Positions 14,701 through 39,600 of a stretch of 64,000 nucleotides of DNA are shown here, one piece after another. Below the pieces are notes generated by a model. It ran no database searches and had not been told where the DNA came from. It was given only the letters and a program-made list of their open reading frames with translations. The stretch is from Pavona decussata (taxonomy: Eukaryota). The DNA lies in contig CDRNST010000122.1 of assembly GCA_977016875.1 (NCBI GenBank), positions 1,736,001 through 1,800,000 of the forward strand. Direction: 5' to 3'. The position numbers and the translations under genes are program-made. Position 1 is the stretch's first letter. Every line of letters begins with the position of its first letter.

Positions 14701-17700
14701 TTTTTGAGGCCAAGAAATTCCAAACCAGTCATCGCTACCAATTTTGCTGGGCGAAAGGTTCTACAATCCTACTAAGGCAATCCTTCGACTCCCGTGTCAT
14801 TAAACTAAAATCCATGAGCGACCTGGAAGTTCTCACCAGCCGACATCAGAGATAAGTTTGTTACCACAACTCTTAATCTTATTCTAAGCCTCATGACTGT
14901 AATAACAAACATTCAAACTTCTCGCCAACGCAGAAATGATCTTAAAGAACTACCATATTATAATGTAACTTCATGTCTACTTACCGTCCATGGTCAATTT
15001 AATAATAGTTTGGCTAACGATTTACCCACAAAACAACTTCTAGACAAACTACCTAGTCTTTACGATTTAGATCTCTTTAACCTAAACATCAATGAAGACA
15101 TAAATCCTGATGAGAATTTTGCATACAAACAATTTCGATCTAATTATTACTCCCCGTACAAATTTTCCGAGATAAAGAGGTCCGTATCGGACTCGTCTTT
15201 ATCCTTTATACATCAGAACATTAGGAGTCTAAAAAGAAATATTGAAAATTTCCAGGATCATTTACTTCATGAATTAAACTTTAATTTTAGCGTAATAGGC
15301 CTCTCAGAAACACGGATTACCAATGCTGATGCTAATTTTCTCACCTTTAATCCTGATATACCAGGTTATTGTTTTGAATATGTCCCAACACCTCTCTCTG
15401 CCGGAGGTGTTGGTATGTACATAAAGGAAGGAATTAGCTATAAGGTAATTGAAAAAACTTCGAATGTCTCTTTTCAAGGACTGTGGATAGAACTTCAATT
15501 TCCCAAAAAGACAAATGTCATCTGCGCTATTTTGTATAGGCAGCATAACTCTCCTGAGGATTTTCAAAACTACCTTGACTCGTGTCTAGAGAAATATAGC
15601 TCCTCCTACAAACCTATTTACATTCTCGGCGACTTCAACATAAATCTCCTCAATTTCGAAACTTGTAGATACGCCAACGACTTCCTACTTTTACTCCAAA
15701 GTTATGCTCTAACCCCAGTTATCGATAAACCAACCAGGGTCTATAGCAGCTCTGCCACACTAATCGATAATATCCTTGCCAGTCAAGTTGATGATCTCGA
15801 TTTCGTCTTAAGTGGTAATGTTGTGTCAGACATCAGTTATCATTTTTCCCAGTTCTGCCTCTTGCCTGCTTATAAACTGCAATTTTCACTTACAGCCATC
15901 TGTCGTGAATATCGCGATTTTTCTTCCTTTTCTGACGATTCTTTCCTAAATGACCTGGAGCAAATTGATTGGGACAGTATAGGCCACTCGAATCGCGATA
16001 TAAACAAATCATTCTCCACTTTTTTCCACAAAACTCTCAGGGTGTTAAATAAACACGCTCCTACGAAAATTACCTCAAGGCGTAAAGCCAAACAGCAACT
16101 GAAACCTTGGATCACAAAAGGCATCAGGAGATCTATAAGTCTAAAAAACCAATTCTATCATTCGGGAGAAAACCAAAAAGATTAAGTAAAAAGCTTTATT
16201 TTCATAACTTTTTCTCGCGAAACTTACACAACACGAAGAAAACATGGAAAGGGATAAATGATTTAATTGGCCGCAGGAAGAAACCGAAACAGACAATTAC
16301 CTCAATAAGAGCACCGAACAACAAGAGAGTGATTTCTGACGCACAGGGTATATCGAATGTGCTTAACAAACACTTTGCTACCGTGGGCCATAAACTGGCC
16401 TCGGGGACGCCACATTCAAAACTTAATTTTCGTACATACCTCCAGGGGCTGTCGCCCGCAAATTCAAACTCTTTCTTCTTCGATCCAATTATACCTGCAG
16501 AAGTTAGTAATGAGATCGTTTCCTTATCATACAATAAAGCTCACGGATTATACTCATTCCCAGTTCGAATATTGAAATGCGCTAGCCACATATTATCAAG
16601 CCCATTGGCAAGGATTATGAATTTATCGGTTGAAACAGGAACTTTTCCCAATAAACTAAAATATGCAAAAGTAATCCCCGTTTATAAAACCGGCGACAAA
16701 CTTGAATGTGGAAATTATCGCCCTATTTCACTTCTATCTAATATTAATAAAGTGTTCGAGAAACTAATGTTCAACAGAATTAAAAAATTTATTGCAAATC
16801 ACAATATATTATCCACATCACAATACGGCTTCACATGGGAATTTGTTTCCACTATCTTTAATACTCTCCAAGAAGACTCAAGTGTGCACCATAGGAAACC
16901 AAAGCTCATTAGCTTGGTTTGTTCAGGTTACACCGTCCGTTTCATCCACAGGCTGAAAAGATAGAATCACATAAAACTTGTACAGCATAACAAACAGCAA
17001 CACATGAAAGTACAAGTTAATAGCTGTAATCTTAATGGCCACAGGTGAGTTCATCCACAGCCTAAAACGATAGAAACCACCTCGTATAGATAACAAACAG
17101 TACTCCAGACAAGTAGGGACCAGAGCCTTTCGTTCGAAATTAAGGTTAAGCTAATCGACGATTTCCTTCTGAGAGACTAAAGTTTGATAAATTTCTTACC
17201 AAAATTAAGTCTAGGGCGGAAATGGGAAATTACAGTGCACCAGTTGTACATATTTTCTACTGACGTACTGAACACACCACCAAATAACCGCAAATTCTTG
17301 TTCTTGTTATTTTACGTTCCAGTTCCTACACAAAAGAAAAATTTGATGGTGAGATACCTCGGTGGAACTTCGTTGACTTCGGCCAGGCTTGCATGATGAT
17401 ATTTCGAATTTTGTGTGGTGAATGGATTGAACCGCTGTACGACACCATGCGGGCGACCAGCCCTGTGTCTTTCCTGTTTTTCCTCACAGCTTTAGTCATT
17501 GGAAACTTTTTGGTGAGTTATCTGACCAATTCTGTAGTAGCCAACACAGAAGAGCTTCTCTTTATTGCTATGTACCCTTCCATTATCTAATATAACCGTT
17601 TTGCCCACACCAGGTTTTAAATCTGTTTCTTGCTCTGCTGTTGAACGCTTTCGCTCGGGAGTCTCTGCAAGAAGAAGCAGAGAAAAGAGGGGAGGCCAGG

Positions 17701-29100: not shown

Positions 29101-31606
29101 ATTCTTCAACGAATTAAACTCAAAATACCCTTATAATATAACTCCGACTCGCGCAGCGTTTTAAAGAATATTAAAATAGATGCGGTATGCCAACAATTAT
29201 CCTCGCTGAGCAGACTCAAACATTATAACCAACTTGTAGAATGTGATAAACAGTTGAATGGTCACAGTTAAGGATTGTATCCACAGACCCAAAAGTTAAA
29301 GCCGCCTTTTAGAGCCGTTATTTTCTCTTACTGTACCTTTGGCCCTGAAGGAGACTGCCCAAATAAAATTAGCCTTTGCCATAGTGCCAGCCCTGCAATC
29401 AGTTTGGTTTGATTTGAATGGTCACACTTTAGCAAATCATCCACAGACTTAAAAGTTAGAGTGGCGCTGTTTATTATTCTAAACAAGGTAGCGGAAAAGT
29501 TATGCTCAGTGGTTTCCATTTGAATGGTCACACTTAAGGATTTCACCCACAGACTCAAAAGTTAGAACCTCCTTGTACAGCATGATAAACTGCACCACAG
29601 GAAAGAACTGCTCAGTAGCTTTCATTGGAAAGCCCCATGCTTAAGGATCTGACAAGACTTAAACAGTTTAGCGCCACCTGGTACAGCATAATAACAGCAC
29701 TTCAGTAATTGAAGTACTGCTTAGCAGCATTCATTTCAATGGTCACATTTTAAGATTTCGTCCACTTTGCTGTCATGGTGAGTTCCGCGTGGGTGTACTA
29801 GATGTGTTCGGAGCTGTCAGGTGCAAAGTGGACTATCCCGAAATAAATATGATGATCCAAGCGAGCTGAGCTTTTCAAGTGTGCTTCATACGTATTTAGT
29901 CCTACATCTATGTTGCCAAGTGCTTTATCAAAAAGGTGTTATATATTTTATGTCTAGGACCAGAAGGAATCTTTACACATCACGCTATCTTTATTCTAGT
30001 GTAACTAAGTTAAAGCTCACGACACAAATTGTCCTAATTTGACGCGTTTGGTGTCTGCGTTCAAAGTAATATAAAATACCTTTAGGAAAGCGTGTTCTTT
30101 GTTCTTCAATGGCGAGCAGGAGAAGCGAATAGCTATTATTTGAAGAGTCTAAGCTGCGAGACGCCACTGAAAAGAGTTAAGGGGGCAATCTGGATCAGTG
30201 CCATCGAAGTTTTCGACGTCATCTCGTCTAGGTTTGAAGCAATCTGATCCAAAATGCCTCATCGAAATTCAACTAGATTAGCCCCCTCAAATGTCCCCCT
30301 TTTTGTTTTAGTTTAATTTTAAGCGCTTTTGGAGTGAAAGGGATCATTTATTAATACAAATAATCGTCTCAGTTACAATCCTATTATTTCAAAAATTTAC
30401 TTCAGTGTTCTTTGTCTTAAAATGCCAAGAAATGGATGATGGTGTTTCGCCTACATTTGTGTGCATTTATCTTATCCGTTTTTTCGTTTCTTTTTAGGAA
30501 TTGTGCTGGAATACCTCGACTACAAGTTTATCGTCACCCCGAGTTTATTCCGTGTGGCTCGAGTTTTTAGAATTGGAAGATTGTTGCGGTTTTACAGGGG
30601 CGCACGTGGGATCCGCCGGCTTCTCTTTGCTCTTGTCATCTCTCTTCCAGCGCTGTTTAACATAGGCGCTTTGTTGTTTCTTGTCATGTTCATTTATGCT
30701 ATTATTGGAATGTCATCGTTTGGTTATGTTAAAAAAACTGGAGCACTGGACGACGTGGTGAATTTTGAGACGTTTGGCAGCAGTATGTTGCTTTTATTCA
30801 GACTTTCCACGTCTGCAGGGTGGAACGATGTTCTTGAGCCATTGCTGATCCAGTCTCCAGACTGCGACGAGAAGTACCTGGGACAACCCAATGGGAATTG
30901 TGGGACACCGTGGCTGGCGATACTTTATTTCATCTCATTCATACTTCTAACTTTCTTGATCATCATCAACATGTACATAGCCATCATTTTAGAGAACCTT
31001 AGTCAAGCACATCAACAGGACGAAGTTGGAATTACCGATGATGACTTGGAAATGTTTTATGCGCTATGGGAACGTTACGATCCGGACGCCACTCAATATA
31101 TTCTTCATTCTCAATTGTCTGACTTTGTCGACAACCTTGAACCGCCATTGAGACTTCCTCAACCTAATAAGTTTGCGTGCATTCATTTGAATATTCCCAT
31201 CAAACAAGGAGACAGAATTCACTGTTTTGATGTCATGCAAGCATTGGTGCGAAGGGTTATCGGCGAAATTGAAGAGGAGGACTCTGTAGCCTTTGCCCTT
31301 ATGAAATCTAGAATGGAACATCATTTTGTCACCGCGTTCCCAAAACGCGCAAGAACTCAAACCGAAAGCACAACATTGAAAAGGATTCAGGAAATTCGCG
31401 CCGCGACGATAATTCAGCGTTCATATAGACAATACCGCTTCCAGTTAGAACTAAGAAAATTTAGGCTTCAGAAAAGTCAACAGTTTGAAAACAGCCCATC
31501 TTCTGTAACAGAAGTGAGACCCCACGGGAGTGTTCAGATTACGGTGGAGGAACAAGAGCCTGAAAACGAGTCACATGACACTATTGTTGTGATCTCTGAT
31601 GATTGA
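1286..31606 (+). CDS. Nav2: Voltage-gated sodium channel alpha subunit, Nav2-type (DEEA filter), 25 coding exons, about 1824 aa
   Basis: Manually joined exons 1286-1504, 5401-5528, 6456-6536, 6642-6770, 7483-7574, 7896-8090, 8768-8828, 9449-9590, 10067-10204, 11104-11958, 12925-13113, 13741-13892, 17323-17512, 17614-17845, 18795-18880, 19456-19788, 20623-20796, 21882-22010, 23360-23623, 24297-24350, 24808-24945, 25241-25354, 26115-26253, 27102-27233, 30498-31606 give 5475 nt with compatible phases. Four S4 segments ([52 protein letters not shown]), pore loops TMDFWE/CGEWIE/TFEGWME/TSAGWND, III-IV linker DIFLT, IQ motif IIQRSYR. Confidence 0.96.
4871..5111. mobile_element. MITE with about 55-bp TIRs
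   Basis: GGCCCCAGTTGTTCAAAGGCCGGATAACTTTATCC ... GGATAAAGTTATCCGGCCTTTGAACAACTGGTGCC; a one-ended relative sits at about 10428-10480. Confidence 0.85.
5401..5528 (+). CDS. Nav2: Nav2 exon 2
   Basis: [42 protein letters not shown]; acceptor TTTCAG; U12 donor GTATCCTTT. Confidence 0.92.
5592..5972. repeat. Tandem duplication (about 198 and 183 bp) containing (TCA)n microsatellites
   Basis: TATGTCATCGCCATCATTAG...GCCGTGCTAATTAA occurs at 5592 and 5790; copies differ mainly in TCA count. Confidence 0.95.
5641..6420 (-). mobile_element. 5'-truncated CR1/L2-type LINE 3' fragment with (TGA)n tail
   Basis: Minus strand reads [17 protein letters not shown], an ORF2 C-terminal motif; AATAAA directly before the (GAT)n tail; tail region tandemly duplicated. 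Confidence 0.65.
6456..6536 (+). CDS. Nav2: Nav2 exon 3 (DI S1)
   Basis: [19 protein letters not shown]; preceded by U12 branch site TCCTTAAC; donor GTACGT. Confidence 0.92.
6642..6770 (+). CDS. Nav2: Nav2 exon 4 (DI S2-S3)
   Basis: [20 protein letters not shown]...[17 protein letters not shown]. Confidence 0.95.
7483..7574 (+). CDS. Nav2: Nav2 exon 5 (DI S3-S4)
   Basis: [22 protein letters not shown]. Confidence 0.95.
7896..8090 (+). CDS. Nav2: Nav2 exon 6 (DI S5)
   Basis: [11 protein letters not shown]...[18 protein letters not shown]. Confidence 0.95.
8768..8828 (+). CDS. Nav2: Nav2 exon 7 (DI extracellular loop)
   Basis: [19 protein letters not shown]; phases fit both neighbours. Confidence 0.9.
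9094..9236. mobile_element. Tc1/mariner(pogo)-like MITE
   Basis: TA-CAGTCGACTCCCGATAACTCGAAC ... GTTTGAGTTATTGGGAGTCGACTG. Confidence 0.8.
9449..9590 (+). CDS. Nav2: Nav2 exon 8 (DI pore loop, filter D)
   Basis: CPVNYTC...[34 protein letters not shown]. Confidence 0.96.
10067..10204 (+). CDS. Nav2: Nav2 exon 9 (DI S6)
   Basis: [22 protein letters not shown]. Confidence 0.96.
11104..11958 (+). CDS. Nav2: Nav2 exon 10 (I-II linker and DII S1)
   Basis: 855-nt open exon ending [27 protein letters not shown]...IGNM. Confidence 0.93.
11981..12692. repeat. Compound (AGC/AGT)n microsatellite with 46-nt higher-order unit
   Basis: GAAGCAGCAGC recurs at 12014, 12060, 12106, 12152, 12198, 12244. Confidence 0.95.
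12925..13113 (+). CDS. Nav2: Nav2 exon 11 (DII S2-S4)
   Basis: [14 protein letters not shown]...WNIFDGFIV...[10 protein letters not shown]. Confidence 0.95.
13234..13515. mobile_element. Non-autonomous palindrome-containing interspersed repeat
   Basis: TTAATGTATGGTCCC...GGGACCATACATTAA and TAGACTTTC...GAAAGTCTA inverted pairs. Confidence 0.6.
13741..13892 (+). CDS. Nav2: Nav2 exon 12 (DII S4-S5)
   Basis: [50 protein letters not shown]. Confidence 0.95.
13897..14440 (-). mobile_element. CR1/L2-type LINE 3' end (ORF2 C-terminus, 3' UTR stem-loop, (ATTGA)n tail)
   Basis: [30 protein letters not shown]; hairpin CACTAGCCCGC...GCGGGTAGTG; AATAAA followed by TTGAATTGAA tail on the minus strand. 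Confidence 0.88.
14441..14855 (+). pseudogene. LINE ORF1 C-terminal part
   Basis: DIDIAHRVP...PVICKFTRR...[17 protein letters not shown]...[15 protein letters not shown], typical of CR1/L2-group ORF1. Confidence 0.8.
14893..16832 (+). pseudogene. LINE ORF2: APE endonuclease and start of reverse transcriptase, frameshifted and truncated
   Basis: [42 protein letters not shown]; canonical SDH appears as SYH; frameshift near 16180; [17 protein letters not shown] and SQYGF, then homology ends with no YADD. Confidence 0.93.
17323..17512 (+). CDS. Nav2: Nav2 exon 13 (DII pore loop, filter E)
   Basis: [32 protein letters not shown]...VIGNFL. Confidence 0.96.
17614..17845 (+). CDS. Nav2: Nav2 exon 14 (DII S6 end, II-III linker)
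   Basis: [13 protein letters not shown]...; donor GTACTA, phase 1. Confidence 0.88.
17937..18657. mobile_element. Fold-back or non-autonomous DNA transposon with about 165-bp diverged TIRs
   Basis: TGATTGACAAGTGAGGAGCCAATCACAA vs TTGTGATTGGCTCCTCACCTGTCAATCA; CCAAAGTGGACC vs GGTCCACTTT; GAGTAGTGAAAG vs CTTTACTACTC. Confidence 0.8.
18795..18880 (+). CDS. Nav2: Nav2 exon 15 (II-III linker)
   Basis: [28 protein letters not shown]; TTAG acceptor and GTAAGT donor; needed to bridge phase 1 to phase 0. Confidence 0.78.
19456..19788 (+). CDS. Nav2: Nav2 exon 16 (II-III linker and DIII S1)
   Basis: Ends [22 protein letters not shown]. Confidence 0.9.
19880..20172. mobile_element. Palindrome-ended interspersed repeat
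   Basis: AACAATTATTCCAC..GTTGGATATGAGATGA ... TCATCTCATATCCAAC..GTGGAATAATTGTT hairpin plus GGCCATGGTATA...TATACCATGGCC. Confidence 0.7.
20623..20796 (+). CDS. Nav2: Nav2 exon 17 (DIII S2-S3)
   Basis: VFEDVHL...[15 protein letters not shown]. Confidence 0.95.
21057..21101 (+). other. Candidate alternative or duplicated DIII S3-S4 exon
   Basis: Pyrimidine tract plus [24 protein letters not shown] donor; read-through gives VRILN then stop; resembles exon 18. Confidence 0.45.
21882..22010 (+). CDS. Nav2: Nav2 exon 18 (DIII S3-S4)
   Basis: ISLASVS...[26 protein letters not shown]. Confidence 0.96.
22131..22533. mobile_element. MITE with internal ATCGCCG(CGAT) repeats
   Basis: AGCCAGCAACACACTTGGCGATTTTATACGCC ... 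GGCGTATAAAATCGCCAGGTGTATCGCCGGCT. Confidence 0.85.
22830..23050 (+). mobile_element. Degenerate SINE (Nin-domain-like)
   Basis: GGAGTAACCTTACGATTTACTAGCACCCCATTTACGGGAGG resembles the conserved cnidarian SINE central domain; recalled, not searched. Confidence 0.45.
23360..23623 (+). CDS. Nav2: Nav2 exon 19 (DIII S5)
   Basis: [39 protein letters not shown]...[15 protein letters not shown]. Confidence 0.96.
24297..24350 (+). CDS. Nav2: Nav2 exon 20 (DIII pore loop, filter E)
   Basis: [18 protein letters not shown]. Confidence 0.96.
24468..24642. mobile_element. MITE
   Basis: AATAGGCCATT..TTGAACCTCATTACAAAAGCGAGGCT ... AGCCTCGCTTTCATAATGAGGTTCAA..AATGGCCCATT. Confidence 0.8.
24808..24945 (+). 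CDS. Nav2: Nav2 exon 21 (DIII S6)
   Basis: [33 protein letters not shown]. Confidence 0.96.
25241..25354 (+). CDS. Nav2: Nav2 exon 22 (III-IV inactivation linker)
   Basis: [38 protein letters not shown]. Confidence 0.95.
26115..26253 (+). CDS. Nav2: Nav2 exon 23 (DIV S1)
   Basis: [25 protein letters not shown]; followed by the AT-AC donor ATATCCTTT. Confidence 0.92.
26254..27101 (+). other. U12-type AT-AC intron
   Basis: 5' site ATATCCTTT; branch TTCCTTAAC at 27063-27071; AC at 27100-27101 restores the frame. Confidence 0.92.
26301..26465. mobile_element. Palindromic element inside the AT-AC intron
   Basis: AATATCCCAC..GTGACTTGATTTTTCTT ... AAGAAAAATCAAGTCAC..GTGGGATATT; TAGTTATG/CATAACTA ends. 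Confidence 0.75.
27102..27233 (+). CDS. Nav2: Nav2 exon 24 (DIV S2-S3)
   Basis: [43 protein letters not shown]; AC acceptor. Confidence 0.9.
29240..29765. repeat. Diverged about 105-bp satellite-like repeat family; other copies near 16870-17110, 42780-43155 and 47900-48180
   Basis: Recurrent TTGAATGGTCACACTTAAGGATTTCATCCACAGACTCAAAAGTTAGAACC-like unit. Confidence 0.85.
30498..31606 (+). CDS. Nav2: Nav2 exon 25 (DIV S4-S6, EF-hand-like region, IQ motif, stop)
   Basis: [54 protein letters not shown]; TGA at 31604-31606. Confidence 0.97.
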
Positions 31607-32420: not shown

Positions 32421-34413
32421 TTGTCAAAAGTACGTGGGTCGGAACAGCAGCAATTTTGGTTTCATCCGTCGCGTCTTCCTCTGCAAGAGTAGCGGCGCGT
32501 TTATTTATTGCGATTTTTTTTAAAGCAAGATGATAACTGAATATTAATAAGGGTGCATTGTTCTGCATGGTACGATTCCGGAATAGGAATCCACGGAATA
32601 GACCTGTATTCATGTTTTTTAGGGACCTCTTCTGTTTTTGGAATGAACAGAATAGTATTCCGTTCATTCTGACCCTAATGAATGGAATAGAGTTACTAAG
32701 AATAACAGAAATTGCGTTCTTTTGGTGAGGTTTACAGGCCAGTAATGGGAATAGGGGGAAAGTGATATTCCTTTCCTGATAGCTAAAATTGTTCCAAAAG
32801 AATGCGCCCTGGCTACGTTTGCGGTTTCATTCCCCTGAGCAGTCACCTTGGTCAGCATTACCAAGTTCGGGCTATTTACAGACCTCGGCTATCGCCTGCT
32901 ATGATGACTGCCATGCATCAAATCGAGTATCAGGGATTTTTTCGTTTTTCTGCACCTGAGCTGAGCTGTTCAAGAAATTGAAGTGTTACATCAAATGGCT
33001 GTCTCGAATTGCCTTAATTTGCTGTGTTTTCATGATTTAGCTCGTTATTTCGTAGTTCTAATTATTCATCTCTAAAAATGATACTAAATAACTATTGTTT
33101 AAAATATTTTGGGGCAACACAATTAACCCCTGGTTTTCGCGTCGCATCACACTTCATTGGGACGAAGGAAATACTTTGTGATAGCTGTCGGTCTCGCCGA
33201 CTAAGGTAAAGCAAGGCTCCAATGCTGCATTCCACTTTCTACATTTTCTTAATCTTCTTCTTCCTCTTTTTTTTTTAATTTGATTTTTTGGTCCGACTAC
33301 GAACCTCGGTAAAACTTAGCTCTGGCTACTAGCCTTTTCGCCAGTGTACCTGTGATTAAAACAGGGTACATGGTTACTTGTAAACGGTAAAGTAATTTTT
33401 TTTGACATGTTCCCGAAGGTCAAAATACTTGGTGCAAGTTTGAACACCTAGTAGCTTGGATTGATTTGAGGAGATTACCAAGCTTAACATTTTTCATAAA
33501 AAAAGAGATAATCGGCGTTTCTTTTAAAGTGATTTTTTTTCTCCAGGTGTCTCGTCGCTTCCGCTAGTAGAGGCGAACTGTCTGTTTTTATATTGTTATT
33601 ATTTTTATCGTAAACGATTTTGGCGTCTCTTCTGTGAGATTATTTGTTAGCTGCGGTTTCCAGTAATCTTCATCTTTCTCTTTCGTGTTGTTCGTGTAAG
33701 CAAAATGCTGTCAAATTACAGCATATTAATGGTGATGTATGGTGATCCGGATTTGCCACTTGTACACTCCGTATCTTTGTAACAACAAGAAAACATTCCT
33801 GAAGCTAAAAATATTGCGCAAGTTTGCGATGCAAATTCAGTAGATTGTGTCGAGGAGCTTTTAGATAGAGAAGCACGCGATCAAAAGAGGCAGAGTTCAG
33901 TAATCGGGTGAGTAGTGAAACAGTTTTTAAATAACACTAAGCTAATAGATCCGATTTGATAGATCACCTTCGCATTATTCTAAAACCGCTGCGGTTAATA
34001 AGCGTTTCGTGTAAGCTACTCCCCAGTAAAGGCTGGCAGAAAACTTATGAAAACAACTTGTGTCAGGAAAGTAACGTTGGTATAACTCAATTTAACTATA
34101 CGAGTTTAAGGCGTCTTAGTGTGAGCAAGACAAACCTCCACATTGGTTTCATCAGGATACGCGGAACCAAATAAAATCCAAAACAGGGAAAAAACTAAAA
34201 TAGTTAAAGCCCCTATATCCTATTTCGGAATAAAACAACCCAACAACCAAAGCTTTCACACCAGATGCAACTTACCTACATACATTATGGCAAATAAACG
34301 CTCGCGATTATTATTATTTAGGAATTTGAAATTTACGCGAATTGAAGCCCATAAGCAGATACTAAAAATCCCAAATTAGAGAACTAACATCATCGTGGGA
34401 ACACCTCTTGTAC

Positions 34414-34482
34414 AAATATCCTTGGCATCGGAGACATTTTCTTCCTGGGAGGAAGAAAATGTCTCCGATGCCAAGAATATTT
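34414..34482. repeat. Perfect 26-bp inverted repeat with 3-nt loop
   Basis: CTTGGCATCGGAGACATTTTCTTCCT-GGG-AGGAAGAAAATGTCTCCGATGCCAAG. Confidence 0.95.
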
Positions 34483-34704
34483 TCTCCGGACATGATATGG
34501 AAGAAGTGAATTTCAGAGACAAAAAGATAACTTGAAGTGTTATAAGAGACTGAAGTGTGCTAAAAAGACAATACTATCTATGCAGGGCAAGATTCAGAAT
34601 GTTGAGTATAAAAGAAAGAAATTAGCGGAGCTTTCTAGAACAATTTATATGTTATGTAAGGATGCCCCCAAAGGTACAGGCATTGCCGTATGCACATTGC
34701 CCCC

Positions 34705-35100
34705 ATCCCACACATTTCCCGTATCCCCTACTTTCCCCGCTATATCTCTTGTATTCCCCTCCTTCCCTGTACTCCCTAGGAGGGTTAATGGTTTCTTATC
34801 TCCTACATCCCCCTATCTCACACATTCCCCGTATCCCCTACTTTCCCCGCTATATCACTTATGTACCCCGTCTCCCCTTTTACTCCATAGGAGGGTTAAT
34901 GAACTCCTATCTCCTACATTCCCCTACCTCACACATTCCCCATATCCCCTTCATCCCCCTACCACACACATTTCCCGAATGATCGTATCCCCTACATTCC
35001 CTAGATGTCATGTATTTCCCGCCACCCCTGTTACTCCCAGGGAGGATTATTAAGCTCCTGCCTCATACAATCTCCATATCCCTCTTTCCATATCTCTCCT
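34705..35100. repeat. C-rich about 110-bp minisatellite, about 3 diverged units
   Basis: CACACATTCCCCGTATCCCCTACTTTCCCCGCTATATC and TAGGAGGGTTAATG repeated. Confidence 0.85.
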
Positions 35101-35279
35101 AAATGCCTCCTGACTGACAAGTTCCCAATAACCCCCCCCCCCCCCCAACCAAGTTGCACATTCTCTATATCTTTCACATGCCCCAGTTTCCGTTCATTGT
35201 CAGACCAACACCTCTAATTCATCCTTCGAAAAATATTTGTTAAAGCTATAAAGGCAGCTAAGAATGGTAAAGATATTAA

Positions 35280-36602
35280 GGTGGGGGTTCACCTAAAAGC
35301 CATTTTCACGCCGCTTAAAATCGGTCAAATGAAAATATCTTGTTTGCATTTCAAGCAATACAAAAACCCTCCATTCATAGCACAAATTAATGATTTGGGG
35401 TGTTTTATGAATTTTTGGGTGATTTTTAGGTATATTTGGAAGGAAATAATTTTTCTTGAAGGATTGGTAAAATTAAAAGAAATAAGGAATGTTGAAGATT
35501 TAGTGAAGTTTTAAAATTAGAATTTGTAGTTAATAATTAATAGACGGATACCCAGTTAGTCCACTAGCAACCTGGGGTGCTCTTGCGTGGTTGTCGACTG
35601 TCTGTTAGTGTTCCAAAAATCATTTTCTTTCTTCTATCCATTCTTAAAACTCTTCAAATTTCACTCAAATTCAGGTAGAGCCCCACCTTAAAGGGGGACA
35701 AGAACATACCTTTCTTAACATTTAAATCGAATTTACAGTGGCAGATATATCCATCTGAAGTAGATACAAGTTAAAACGCGCCTTTTAACATGTTAATATA
35801 ACAATGAAAAAAATTAAAAATAATTTGAGCAAAATGCTCCCCCGTCTCTGCTCCCCCCTACCCCCTCATTGGGGTAGAGTTACTGGGCGCAGAGTCTCTG
35901 CAGAGTCCCACCCTCACCGGTCCACCCGCCGAGGGAGCTCCGAAAACCTGATGATGCTGAAAACATTATATATAGGACGCGACAGCGTCTTTCCCTCCCA
36001 TGTGGGACACATTTTCTTAGACGTGCACGAGGCACGGCCTCGTTTTGGTGCGAAGCTTGTTTTCGTCCTATAACGTCATAAAATCACTTTTTTCGTTCAC
36101 AACTCTGACAGAAGTCTTGAACGCGTAGATTTCTTGACATCTTTTAGGTTGATGTCGATTACATCAAGGATTTTCTTGAAAATGTTCGTCTTAAGGTGGG
36201 GGTTCACCTAAAAGCCATTTTCACGCCGCTTAAAATCGGTCAAATGAAAATATCTTGTTTGCATTTCAAGCAATACAAAAACCCTCCATTCATAGCACAA
36301 ATTAATGATTTGGGGTGTTTTATGAATTTTTGGGTGATTTTTAGGTATATTTGGAAGGAAATAATTTTTCTTGAAGGATTGGTAAAATTAAAAGAAATAA
36401 GGAATGTTGAAGATTTAGTGAAGTTTTAAAATTAGAATTTGTAGTTAATAATTAATAGACGGATACCCAGTTAGTCCACTAGCAACCTGGGGTGCTCTTG
36501 CGTGGTTGTCGACTGTCTGTTAGTGTTCCAAAAATCATTTTCTTTCTTCTATCCATTCTTAAAACTCTTCAAATTTCACTCAAATTCAGGTAGAGCCCCA
36601 CC
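35280..36602. mobile_element. Composite-like TTAA-specific element: two identical 408-bp direct repeats around a 499-bp spacer (Kolobok/KolobokP-like)
   Basis: 35280-35687 matches 36195-36602; each copy is TTAA-GGTGGGGGTTCACCT...AGGTAGAGCCCCACC-TTAA; identity stops at the TTAAs. Confidence 0.8.
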
Positions 36603-39600
36603 TTAATTACGGCTTATCAGTGTCAACAACTTTTCTCTTAGCTTTGCTCAAAAGGAGACAATTTTCCGGCATTAGACTGACACCAAATATCGCCGTAATT
36701 TTTTAAAATCCGATTAACACTCAGTCACATCATTGGCTGAGTTCTAAGTGGGAGAACTAATCAATTAAATGTGGTGTGATATGTCTAGAACAGAGTTGAG
36801 ATTGCATTCAAATCAAATAATTAAACAGATAGATTTCGGTATCACAAAAATCTTTACGTGCCTGGAGGACGTGAAAGTCCGTTATGTCAAAATCTTCTTC
36901 ACCTTCCTAAAGAAGAAGAGTGGAGGGAGTAACACTCCTTTACACAAGCAGCAGACTGCTTTTCACCGCGGAGAAAGGACAGAGACCTGATTTGCTAATC
37001 TTGCCACTGTCTTTTTCCTAAAAGTCCGCCGTAGATTTTTTTACATCATCTGGTCTTGCTTTTCCCCTGGTCAAGATCTTTGTGACAGACACTGTACTAC
37101 GGCTGCGCCAAGCCTACTATAAAGCAGCTGTATAAATCTCTCATCGGTTTTGCTGTGTTCATGACTTTTAATGAACTAGAGATCGAGGGGGCTATCCAAA
37201 CAGGGTGGGAGGTAGGGTGCTATAAATGTACTGTGAGACTCATTTGTTTAACCACGCGGGTGCTTCTTACAGATCCTTCAAGAAAGTGTAAACAATAAAA
37301 TATTTTAAGTAATATACAATCGATTAAAATAGGCTTCATCTAACTGTCTACCTAACTAATTAACCTGCTTTATCGGGAAGCCATGCGAAAAAGAAAGGAA
37401 AAATACCTTCAACAGAAAACGTGGCTCGCCCTGTAAAGGCGGTAAATCTTTAAGGGGACTACCTTACTATTCAGAGTAAAACTCTTTCAATTCCACAGCA
37501 TGGCCCCACTATAACTAAAGGTTCTTTTACAATAATTAATCAGTATGGGGCTATCAAGCTTACAACCACTATCTCTTAATTCGTAGGTCAAGGTATCGAA
37601 ACGATAAACAAAGCGAGAATTGAGATTTCTGGAACCTTGCCACCTACTATATTACACACCAGCTAGCATAACCGCCTTATCAACAGAGAAAATATTAATT
37701 AAAGTCGTGGGCGACCATATTGAGTGCCAATGTTGATAATGTGTACAGGAGTTATACATTACATTAGTCGCCTATGTAGATCATTTGTTAGTCGTTTCTC
37801 GGTTGTTCCCCTGTCTTCTTCATTCCCCTATCCACTCTTGCCCCCGTTGAAATTCCCTGTACCTTTCAAGGTGCCTAAGGTTGAATCTCAATATCTCAGA
37901 AAAACAAAAATGTTTCAAATTCAGCGGAAGACAGATCACTGAAACAAGTGAGTGAAGGAACACTGATTTCGTTTCGACCTCCAACAAGCGCGAGTTAAAG
38001 TAGCTCGTGTTATTGAAATTTTACACAAGCCGACACTTGACTGAAAGCTCACACACCAAACAGAGCCGCCGTCCACAAATATTTGTGGAACAAAGCTAAG
38101 GCGATGACATTAACTTCGTGTTCTATTTTGGATAAAGTTTTCTTACAACCAGCTACAATAGCTTCCTGATTTAGTTTGTGGGCTTAAATTGCAATAAAAA
38201 CATAGTTATTTTTGTTTTTATATATTCTTACTGGCAGCCAATCATAGTTTCCAAATGGATTATTGAAAATTACTCTCCAGCTGATGTTTTTTTGTTCGTA
38301 GTTTTTATGGCGTGGGTGTTTGAAAGTTAATGCGCACGGCGTTAAGAGGTCCGATATAAGGCGTCCGTTTTGCCCGCCGGAATTTACATTTCAAGGATCG
38401 TTCTGGACGGGAACAAGAACGGATATCGCTGTATTTTGCGTTGTGTGCAGTCATATGTGACTTGTCAGACAAAAGAAACCCTTCAGTCGAAAGGTAAATT
38501 CAGGAAATTGCGTTGAGACCCGCTATAAGAACGGATGAGAAACTTCAAGATCAAAAGTCATTGGAATTTCTGTGTTGCGTGCCAGCCGCTAAAACAGCGC
38601 AAAATACAATGCAACCAGATGCGCCAGTTCAGATAAAGTCGTGAAGTGCAAGAGGGTTGCATGCCAAGATGAGCCAAAACTATACTTAACTTCCAATACT
38701 TATATTAATTAGTTTATTTTCATGGAACAGTGCAGCTAAAACATTTCATATTGTTTGGATGATGTTCTTCGTCGATGTTGGACGGGTAAAACTAAAAAAT
38801 AAACCAAAAACACACTGTTTCTCGAGGGAAATATTACGAGTGGGAAAACTTGAAAACAGTTCAGGCGGAACTTTTGAGTTTTACGGAAATAAAAGTAAAC
38901 TTGCGCGCGCATCACATTTAGATTTCACATCATTTGTGCTGCTGACTTTAGATGAACTTTGATAAATTGGTTCAATGTTTATTTGTTCAGTTCGTAAAAT
39001 AAAAGGGCATACACTACAAAAAACGTGTTTGATTTGATGTGAGCCGATGATAAATGGCTACTGAAATATTTACAGTTCCTTCTTGTTCCAATCTTCTAAT
39101 GTCCATCTTTCAACAAAACTGACCTCGCAAGTTTCTAAACTTAATATCGCGTGTCCTCTTCGGTGAGAAAGCCTTTCACACCTTGAGAAGTCAACTAAAT
39201 TCCTATTGTCTGTATTTCACCTCAACAAAAAAACACATTTGATATAATCTTAACTTGACGACCGATAGGATAAGAAAAAATTTGACGCTTGTATTTTGGC
39301 GTGCGAAGAAAGCGCGGTTTCTTTTAAGATTTGATGAGTGCTTTTGAGTGCGCAGCCCCGTAAGAACACCACTCGACACTTTAAGAAAATGATGTCGGCG
39401 ATTCCAGACGTTAAATGACGTTAATTGCCTCCGTTATTGCCCTCTTTTGTGCCTTCTAGACAAAAAGTATTTTAGGTATGCTTTCTGACGTCAGTTTTAA
39501 TACTGCGTAAGAGTGTAGTAAAAGACTGATGTGAGTCAGTCTTGTCGTAAGCGGAACATAACAAGCATTGCAAGCTTGACAGTCTAATGCGCTGATTTCA

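Follow-up and report, generated by a model that had tools for sequence, protein, structure and literature searches.

A very young, non-autonomous composite DNA transposon of probable KolobokP type with a segregating TTAA insertion

Results

The stretch analysed here (the window, 64,000 nucleotides) is positions 1,736,001-1,800,000 of contig C122 in a 602-Mb assembly. It contains the last exon of a sodium-channel-type gene and, 3.7 kb downstream of it, two identical direct repeats that enclose a spacer. The repeat (A) is named LTDR, for long terminal direct repeat, and the spacer (B) is named INT, the internal segment (Table 1). The whole unit, LTDR-TTAA-INT-TTAA-LTDR, measures 1323 bp and is most probably one monomer of a composite DNA transposon that is TTAA-specific, non-autonomous and very young and has the published architecture of KolobokP elements. 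When 35276-35691 and 36191-36606 are aligned, 0 mismatches are found over 416 nt, of which 408 nt remain once the bounding TTAAs are left out; the start-to-start distance is 915 nt. A TTAA adjoins all four LTDR ends, and identity extends 0 nt beyond either bounding side. Each repeat has 22-nt inverted arms (TTAA plus 18 nt) with 82% complementarity; with the TTAA left out, 12 of the first 15 nt of the LTDR match (GGTGGGGGTTCACCT versus GGTGGGGCTCTACCT). The termini are 5'-GG...CC-3' and thus of the RR/YY type (two purines, two pyrimidines) expected of Kolobok elements, and the layout of two LTDRs around an INT, with short inverted repeats inside each LTDR, is that of KolobokP. The 26-nt left end of the LTDR occurs 2 times in the window versus 0 expected by chance. 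The longest open frame of INT spans 94 codons from stop to stop, or 89 aa when a start codon is required. Neither LTDR nor INT gave a match in Pfam or Rfam, no open frame of either fits any Pfam family, and a remnant coding sequence or an RNA gene was therefore rejected as an explanation of INT. A first-pass annotation of this DNA had described two identical 408-bp repeats with imperfect 15-bp terminal inverted repeats starting with GG and bounded by TTAA, and a 499-bp spacer without a recognisable transposase; it had also argued, from the end of identity at the TTAAs, that the unit is no simple tandem duplication. This description proved accurate, and the presence of the unit at many loci speaks in the same direction.

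Table 1. Features of the element in the window and locations of its relatives (window coordinates unless a contig or locus is named)
Feature	Position or location	Strand	Remarks
Left target-site duplication TTAA	35276..35279	.	single TTAA in the empty allele
Left LTDR (A), 408 bp, MITE-like (miniature inverted-repeat transposable element)	35280..35687	+	100% identical to 36195-36602
Inverted ends of left LTDR	35280-35294 and 35673-35687		imperfect, GG...CC
TTAA between left LTDR and INT	35688..35691	.	TTAA at 28/28 LTDR>INT junctions seen in sequence
INT (B), 499 bp, non-coding	35692..36190	+	starts with AG, ends with TC; absent from the empty allele
TTAA between INT and right LTDR	36191..36194	.	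TTAA at 34/34 INT>LTDR junctions seen in sequence
Right LTDR, 408 bp	36195..36602	+	same as left LTDR, including the rare C274
Inverted ends of right LTDR	36195-36209 and 36588-36602		
Right target-site duplication TTAA	36603..36606	.	empty allele; TTAA at both sides of family insertions
Monomers (A-B-A), at least 7	C122 (window), C148, C203, C10, C56, C185, C343		
Arrays (LTDR-INT)n-LTDR, at least 5	C49 and C51 (2 INTs each), C93 (3), C157 (4), C276 (16 INTs, 17 LTDRs)		period 915
Solo LTDRs, youngest subfamily			about 42; sequence seen for 13
INT-LTDR, free TTAA end	C15, C47, C114, C125, C251, C403		
LTDR-INT, free TTAA end	C421, C82, C331		
INT-TTAA-INT-TTAA-INT	C49:104190/104693		coordinates only
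piggyBac-type frame beside the C93 array	L021:2485-3408 and L034:2988-3497	-	PF13843
Metagenome LTDR-like MITEs	L066:2312-2656, L068:2934-3164, L069:195-528, L067:12-33		

The same organism is represented by three other samples, X20, X22 and X23, whose Logan contigs were compared over window 34300-37600. Contigs of all three join 35275 to 36603, with 1327 nt skipped and 4 shared nt. The allele so defined is an empty site with one TTAA (...GATA TTAA TTACGG...), without the spacer and without both repeats. In X22 a single 2490-nt contig runs through the empty site at flank depth, and in X20 and X23 further contigs break off at 35279, the outcome to be expected at a branch point of two alleles. 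Since this joint keeps a single TTAA and nothing of the spacer, the unit as a whole is one polymorphic insertion: it entered one TTAA site, duplicated the TTAA and is still a presence/absence polymorphism. Such an empty site had been predicted in the first-pass annotation, together with the reservation that a spacer collinear with both flanks in empty alleles would point to independent local hops. The empty allele contradicts the latter; as it lacks B, separate hops on either side of a piece of local DNA do not account for B. The summed contig depth over LTDR and INT (window 35188-36630) is about 1000 times that of the flanks in X20, X22, X23 and the coral-metagenome run X1, a value that is not a copy number. 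Arrays of the element may nonetheless be under-represented in the assembly.

Arrangements of the element were read in sequence at 65 loci of the genome; the other genome-wide evidence consists of coordinates and of exact matches to end and junction patterns. Many copies of A and of B are 100% identical. Five arrangements are found among the 65 loci, namely A alone, A-B-A, A(BA)n with a 915-nt period, B-A and A-B. INT has 40 genome matches at 98% identity or more, each beside an LTDR where sequence is available, and the exact LTDR left end occurs 89 times genome-wide, with 40 exact LTDR>INT (A>B) and 49 exact INT>LTDR (B>A) junctions. The same INT has thus been carried between LTDRs to many loci. 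Both kinds of relative that the first-pass annotation had proposed to look for are present: the repeat-spacer-repeat unit recurs at many unrelated TTAA sites, and solo repeats are frequent (about 42). A TTAA stands at both sides in 25 of 25 independent insertions seen in sequence, the flanks being unrelated and devoid of a wider target consensus, and the internal junctions carry it in 62 of 62 cases. Solo LTDRs are likewise flanked by TTAA, which is consistent either with an LTDR moving alone or with a monomer whose two LTDRs have recombined. All nine forms with one LTDR (six INT-LTDR, three LTDR-INT) retain the TTAA intact where the INT is free, as they would if a monomer had lost one of its LTDRs precisely. 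At C49:104190-104714, two INT-TTAA-INT junctions lie 503 nt apart, i.e. three INTs follow one another with no LTDRs, and this run fits seamless LTDR removal inside an array. At C49:903300-904300, C67:4563300-4568000 and C180:1474000-1479200 an LTDR>INT junction lacks a corresponding INT end in its vicinity, and longer INTs may be present there. Solo LTDRs, multimers, INT-LTDR and LTDR-INT forms, INT-INT forms and duplications at the outer ends, which together make up the KolobokP repertoire, are therefore all found in this family. At the C93 array, a short repeated motif is common to both flanks.

Rare variants allow the descent of individual units to be followed. Position 274 of the LTDR is A in nearly all other copies and C in both LTDRs of the window; C274 is also present in a solo copy on C110 and in a rearranged copy on C88. 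The contigs of the other samples agree with this, 35553 C>A being the majority state among them. The two LTDRs of the C203 monomer have T152C and T222G in common, and those of the C88 copy have T244A in common. As for the arrays, three private changes are common to all four INTs on C157, and A283G to all 16 INTs on C276, where two further single changes occur as well. These shared rare markers show that the LTDRs of one unit come from one donor lineage and that the units making up an (LTDR-INT)n-LTDR array have been copied from each other. Loci differ by no more than about 0.6%, and the family is therefore very young.

Relatives of the element were also seen. One sister subfamily, with the LTDR start AAGGGCAATTCACC, forms an array at G000:C6:4022224-4030102 with a period of 922-923 nt and at least 9 units, and another, with the LTDR start GGCGGG, forms an array at G000:C46:6413318-6426135 with a period of 914 nt and 15 junctions (coordinates only in both cases). 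The two have the INT 3' end in common and differ in their LTDR starts; sister LTDRs begin with AA or GG, in line with an RR terminus. An older solo LTDR relative at L028:1914-2320 is 83% identical, with inverted ends that match perfectly over 18 nt (GGGGGGATTACACCTAAA); its flanking TTAA is the exact insertion site of a young LTDR lying in inverted orientation. An INT-like 3' end followed by TTAA and a group-specific flank occurs on C164, C169, C192 and C448 (10 places), on C35 (3), on C85 (2) and on C228 (2). The members of each group have the same flank; they are insertions that were copied at a later time along with larger repeats or segmental duplications. Public metagenome contigs contain TTAA-flanked LTDR-like MITEs of about 230-345 nt, 75-86% identical over the aligned parts, so that the LTDR lineage exists as ordinary MITEs in related organisms.

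Concerning the surroundings of the element, the last exon of the voltage-gated sodium-channel-type gene (Ion_trans plus IQ motif) is at 30461-31606 (+), and open frames of 430 and 285 aa are at 14893-16964 (+). Directly upstream of the element, at 34687-35134, is a C-rich tandem repeat of about 110 nt with about 4 units that are 82-92% alike; sample X23 has a 34-nt length variant at 34920-34953, within this repeat. At 34414-34482 the sequence is nearly a perfect palindrome, its 33-nt arms being 97% complementary around a 3-nt loop, and two variant contigs of this part were found in the coral-metagenome run. Run X1 contains the element at high depth and parts of the unique flanks at about 97% identity. 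Several other organisms and metagenomes share about 10-28% of the words of the stretch.

Discussion

KolobokP elements were described by Kojima and Bao (2022, Mob DNA 13:24, PMC9587614) in molluscs and other animals. They have the structure LTDR-INT-LTDR, with inverted ends of 11-18 or more nt within each LTDR and RR/YY termini, and occur also as solo LTDRs, (LTDR-INT)n-LTDR multimers, solo INTs and INT-INT junctions with one terminal 4-mer (PMC9587614). INT-LTDR forms outnumber LTDR-INT forms, 40 versus 6 in one clam family, and unequal crossover, circles or nuclease-induced exchange have been proposed as mechanisms (PMC9587614). The closest known non-autonomous elements are exemplified by KolobokP-N1_CorFlu, of 1463 bp with an LTDR of 473 bp (PMC9587614). 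The family described here resembles KolobokP in its 4-bp duplication, RR/YY ends, solo LTDRs, multimers and short non-coding INT, in the excess of INT-LTDR over LTDR-INT, and in INT-INT junctions with one copy of the 4-mer. On these grounds we consider it likely that the 1323-bp unit is a monomer of KolobokP architecture. The proposal of the first-pass annotation, a young non-autonomous LTDR-spacer-LTDR element, is borne out by the recurrent unit, the solo LTDRs and the empty site without spacer. Its assignment to KolobokP stands as far as layout, RR/YY ends, TTAA and behaviour are concerned. It falls short with respect to proteins, since no copy encoding a transposase together with a His-Me finger nuclease was found.

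Autonomous KolobokP elements encode a DDD/E transposase as well as a nuclease of the His-Me finger (His-Cys box) type (PMC9587614), and in contrast to these no such partner was found for the present family. The longer coding copies with DDE transposase and His-Me nuclease anticipated in the first-pass annotation were not seen at the 65 loci or in 4 metagenome contigs. Among 100 of the 540 ends matched by a wider pattern, no LTDR pairs 2-10 kb apart, as possible autonomous copies, were seen. As no coding longer copy was found, the KolobokP label is backed by anatomy and behaviour and not by proteins, and membership in the KolobokP lineage is unproven. The Kolobok superfamily itself is recognised by a DDD/E transposase with a C/DxxH signature.

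Several points weigh against the assignment to KolobokP. An autonomous relative was not found, the 4 metagenome contigs from a right-end scan being diverged solo copies only, and a genome search with PF05551 (I-PpoI-like nuclease) gave no candidate but carries no weight, its controls being blank too. With 408 bp, the LTDR falls into neither of the published length classes of about 450 and about 660 bp: in the accessible part of the source, the main values for KolobokP LTDRs are 445-480 and 647-688 bp, with 415 and 441 appearing only as the second value of a pair (PMC9587614). KolobokP duplications are 3-5 bp without strong target preference, and LTDR excision usually loses 1-5 flanking bases (PMC9587614), whereas here the target is always TTAA and LTDR loss is seamless, as in piggyBac. 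Finally, the data on the other samples are contigs and not reads, in which the number of units at the site and a solo-LTDR allele are not visible. The family also differs from KolobokP in its 1323-bp monomer, the shortest in the accessible part of the published list being 1463 bp, and in its host. The latter, with its unique flanks present at about 97% identity in a coral-metagenome run, is probably a stony coral, and Cnidaria are not among the seven phyla in which KolobokP has been reported (PMC9587614). The LTDR ends had no match in those published consensus sequences that are available in text form, and the literature searched contained no report of a KolobokP-type design for corals.

A mechanism can be proposed for the movements of this element. 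The short inverted ends of the LTDR would be bound by a transposase, most likely one of the Kolobok superfamily, whose gene lies elsewhere. This enzyme could bring together both ends of a single LTDR or, for movement of the whole unit, the outer ends of a pair of LTDRs. Cutting out of a single LTDR would leave INT-LTDR or LTDR-INT with TTAA intact. Arrays might grow in place through unequal exchange between LTDRs; the published alternative for array growth would be a circular LTDR-INT intermediate, here of 915 bp. Monomers excised from arrays would account for the rare variants common to the two LTDRs of a unit.

Other mobile elements share parts of this anatomy. Like canonical Kolobok MITEs, the family has a TTAA duplication and GG...CC ends, and its solo LTDR behaves like an ordinary MITE of about 400 bp. 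We know of no ordinary MITEs in which two direct copies enclose a constant internal segment, nor of any that form regular arrays. As in bacterial composite transposons, two mobile end modules move what lies between them, but unlike the insertion sequences of those transposons the LTDRs encode no transposase. Tandem arrays with shared end repeats are known from terminal-repeat retrotransposons in miniature (TRIMs); unlike these, the present family is a DNA element with TTAA and with inverted ends in each repeat, and shows no sign of reverse transcription. With piggyBac-derived MITEs it shares the TTAA target and the seamless excision footprints and differs from them in its RR/YY termini, a feature that separates Kolobok from piggyBac (PMC9587614).

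This last comparison raises the question of the mobilising enzyme. The same composite non-autonomous element could be mobilised by a piggyBac-type rather than a Kolobok transposase, which we regard as unlikely. Strict TTAA targeting and seamless excision are classic piggyBac behaviour, seen here in 25 of 25 insertions and in 9 footprints in which LTDR loss restored the TTAA. The genome moreover encodes piggyBac-type transposases, and one such frame (PF13843, 1.5e-42, plus a zf-Tnp_2 finger) stops about 0.6 kb short of the A(BA)3 array on C93. For these reasons a piggyBac mobiliser remains a minor rival. Such a neighbour is, however, present at one locus only, and the GG...CC ends are of the RR/YY type that PMC9587614 uses to set Kolobok apart. 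In the literature searched, the combination of LTDRs, solo copies and multimers is described only for KolobokP. To our knowledge, LTDR or multimer forms have not been described for piggyBac.

Still less probable is a spread of the 915-bp LTDR-INT unit chiefly through circles or rolling-circle concatemers, from which arrays and monomers would be cut and inserted ready-made. This could explain the private variants common to all units of an array, the rare variants common to the LTDRs of a monomer, the exact TTAA at 62 of 62 internal junctions and the very high summed contig depth over LTDR and INT in all runs, and a circular LTDR-INT intermediate has been raised before (PMC9587614). However, in-place unequal exchange and excision of monomers from multimers explain the same data with no new step, no circle junction was seen, though none was searched for, and summed contig depth is no copy number. 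Two independent MITE insertions 499 bp apart, to which the TTAA on both sides of each LTDR would correspond, and a local tandem duplication or assembly artefact are extremely improbable: local hops around host DNA are ruled out by the empty allele without spacer and repeats, by the same spacer between LTDRs at 12 or more other loci and by the rare C274, lacking in nearly all other copies, in both LTDRs, and duplication or artefact by identity ending exactly at the TTAAs and by recurrence at many loci.

Beyond the KolobokP-type architecture itself, we would suggest, with considerable reserve, that the family is either the first of KolobokP type in Cnidaria or an independent re-invention of this design from an ordinary TTAA Kolobok MITE, and that it is active, strict for TTAA and seamless. 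That it would still be active is suggested because the insertion is polymorphic and copies differ by at most 0.6%.

Conclusions

The element is probably not a new kind of transposon; it is rather a very young, segregating KolobokP-type element with atypical properties and a probable new host phylum. It was only in 2022 that composite-like DNA transposons were described for eukaryotes, on the basis of consensus sequences whose underlying copies were mostly older. The present family is caught young, with near-identical copies, a segregating insertion, and every proposed intermediate present with clean junctions. Host and LTDR length moreover fall outside the published range. All this makes the published models directly testable, namely LTDR excision, transposition of the unit, and array growth by unequal exchange or circles. 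A dispersed 915-bp 'satellite' of this genome is explained by the LTDR-INT arrays. If the family is indeed a cnidarian KolobokP-type element or a re-invention of one, it would provide a tractable natural system for LTDR likeness and array building.

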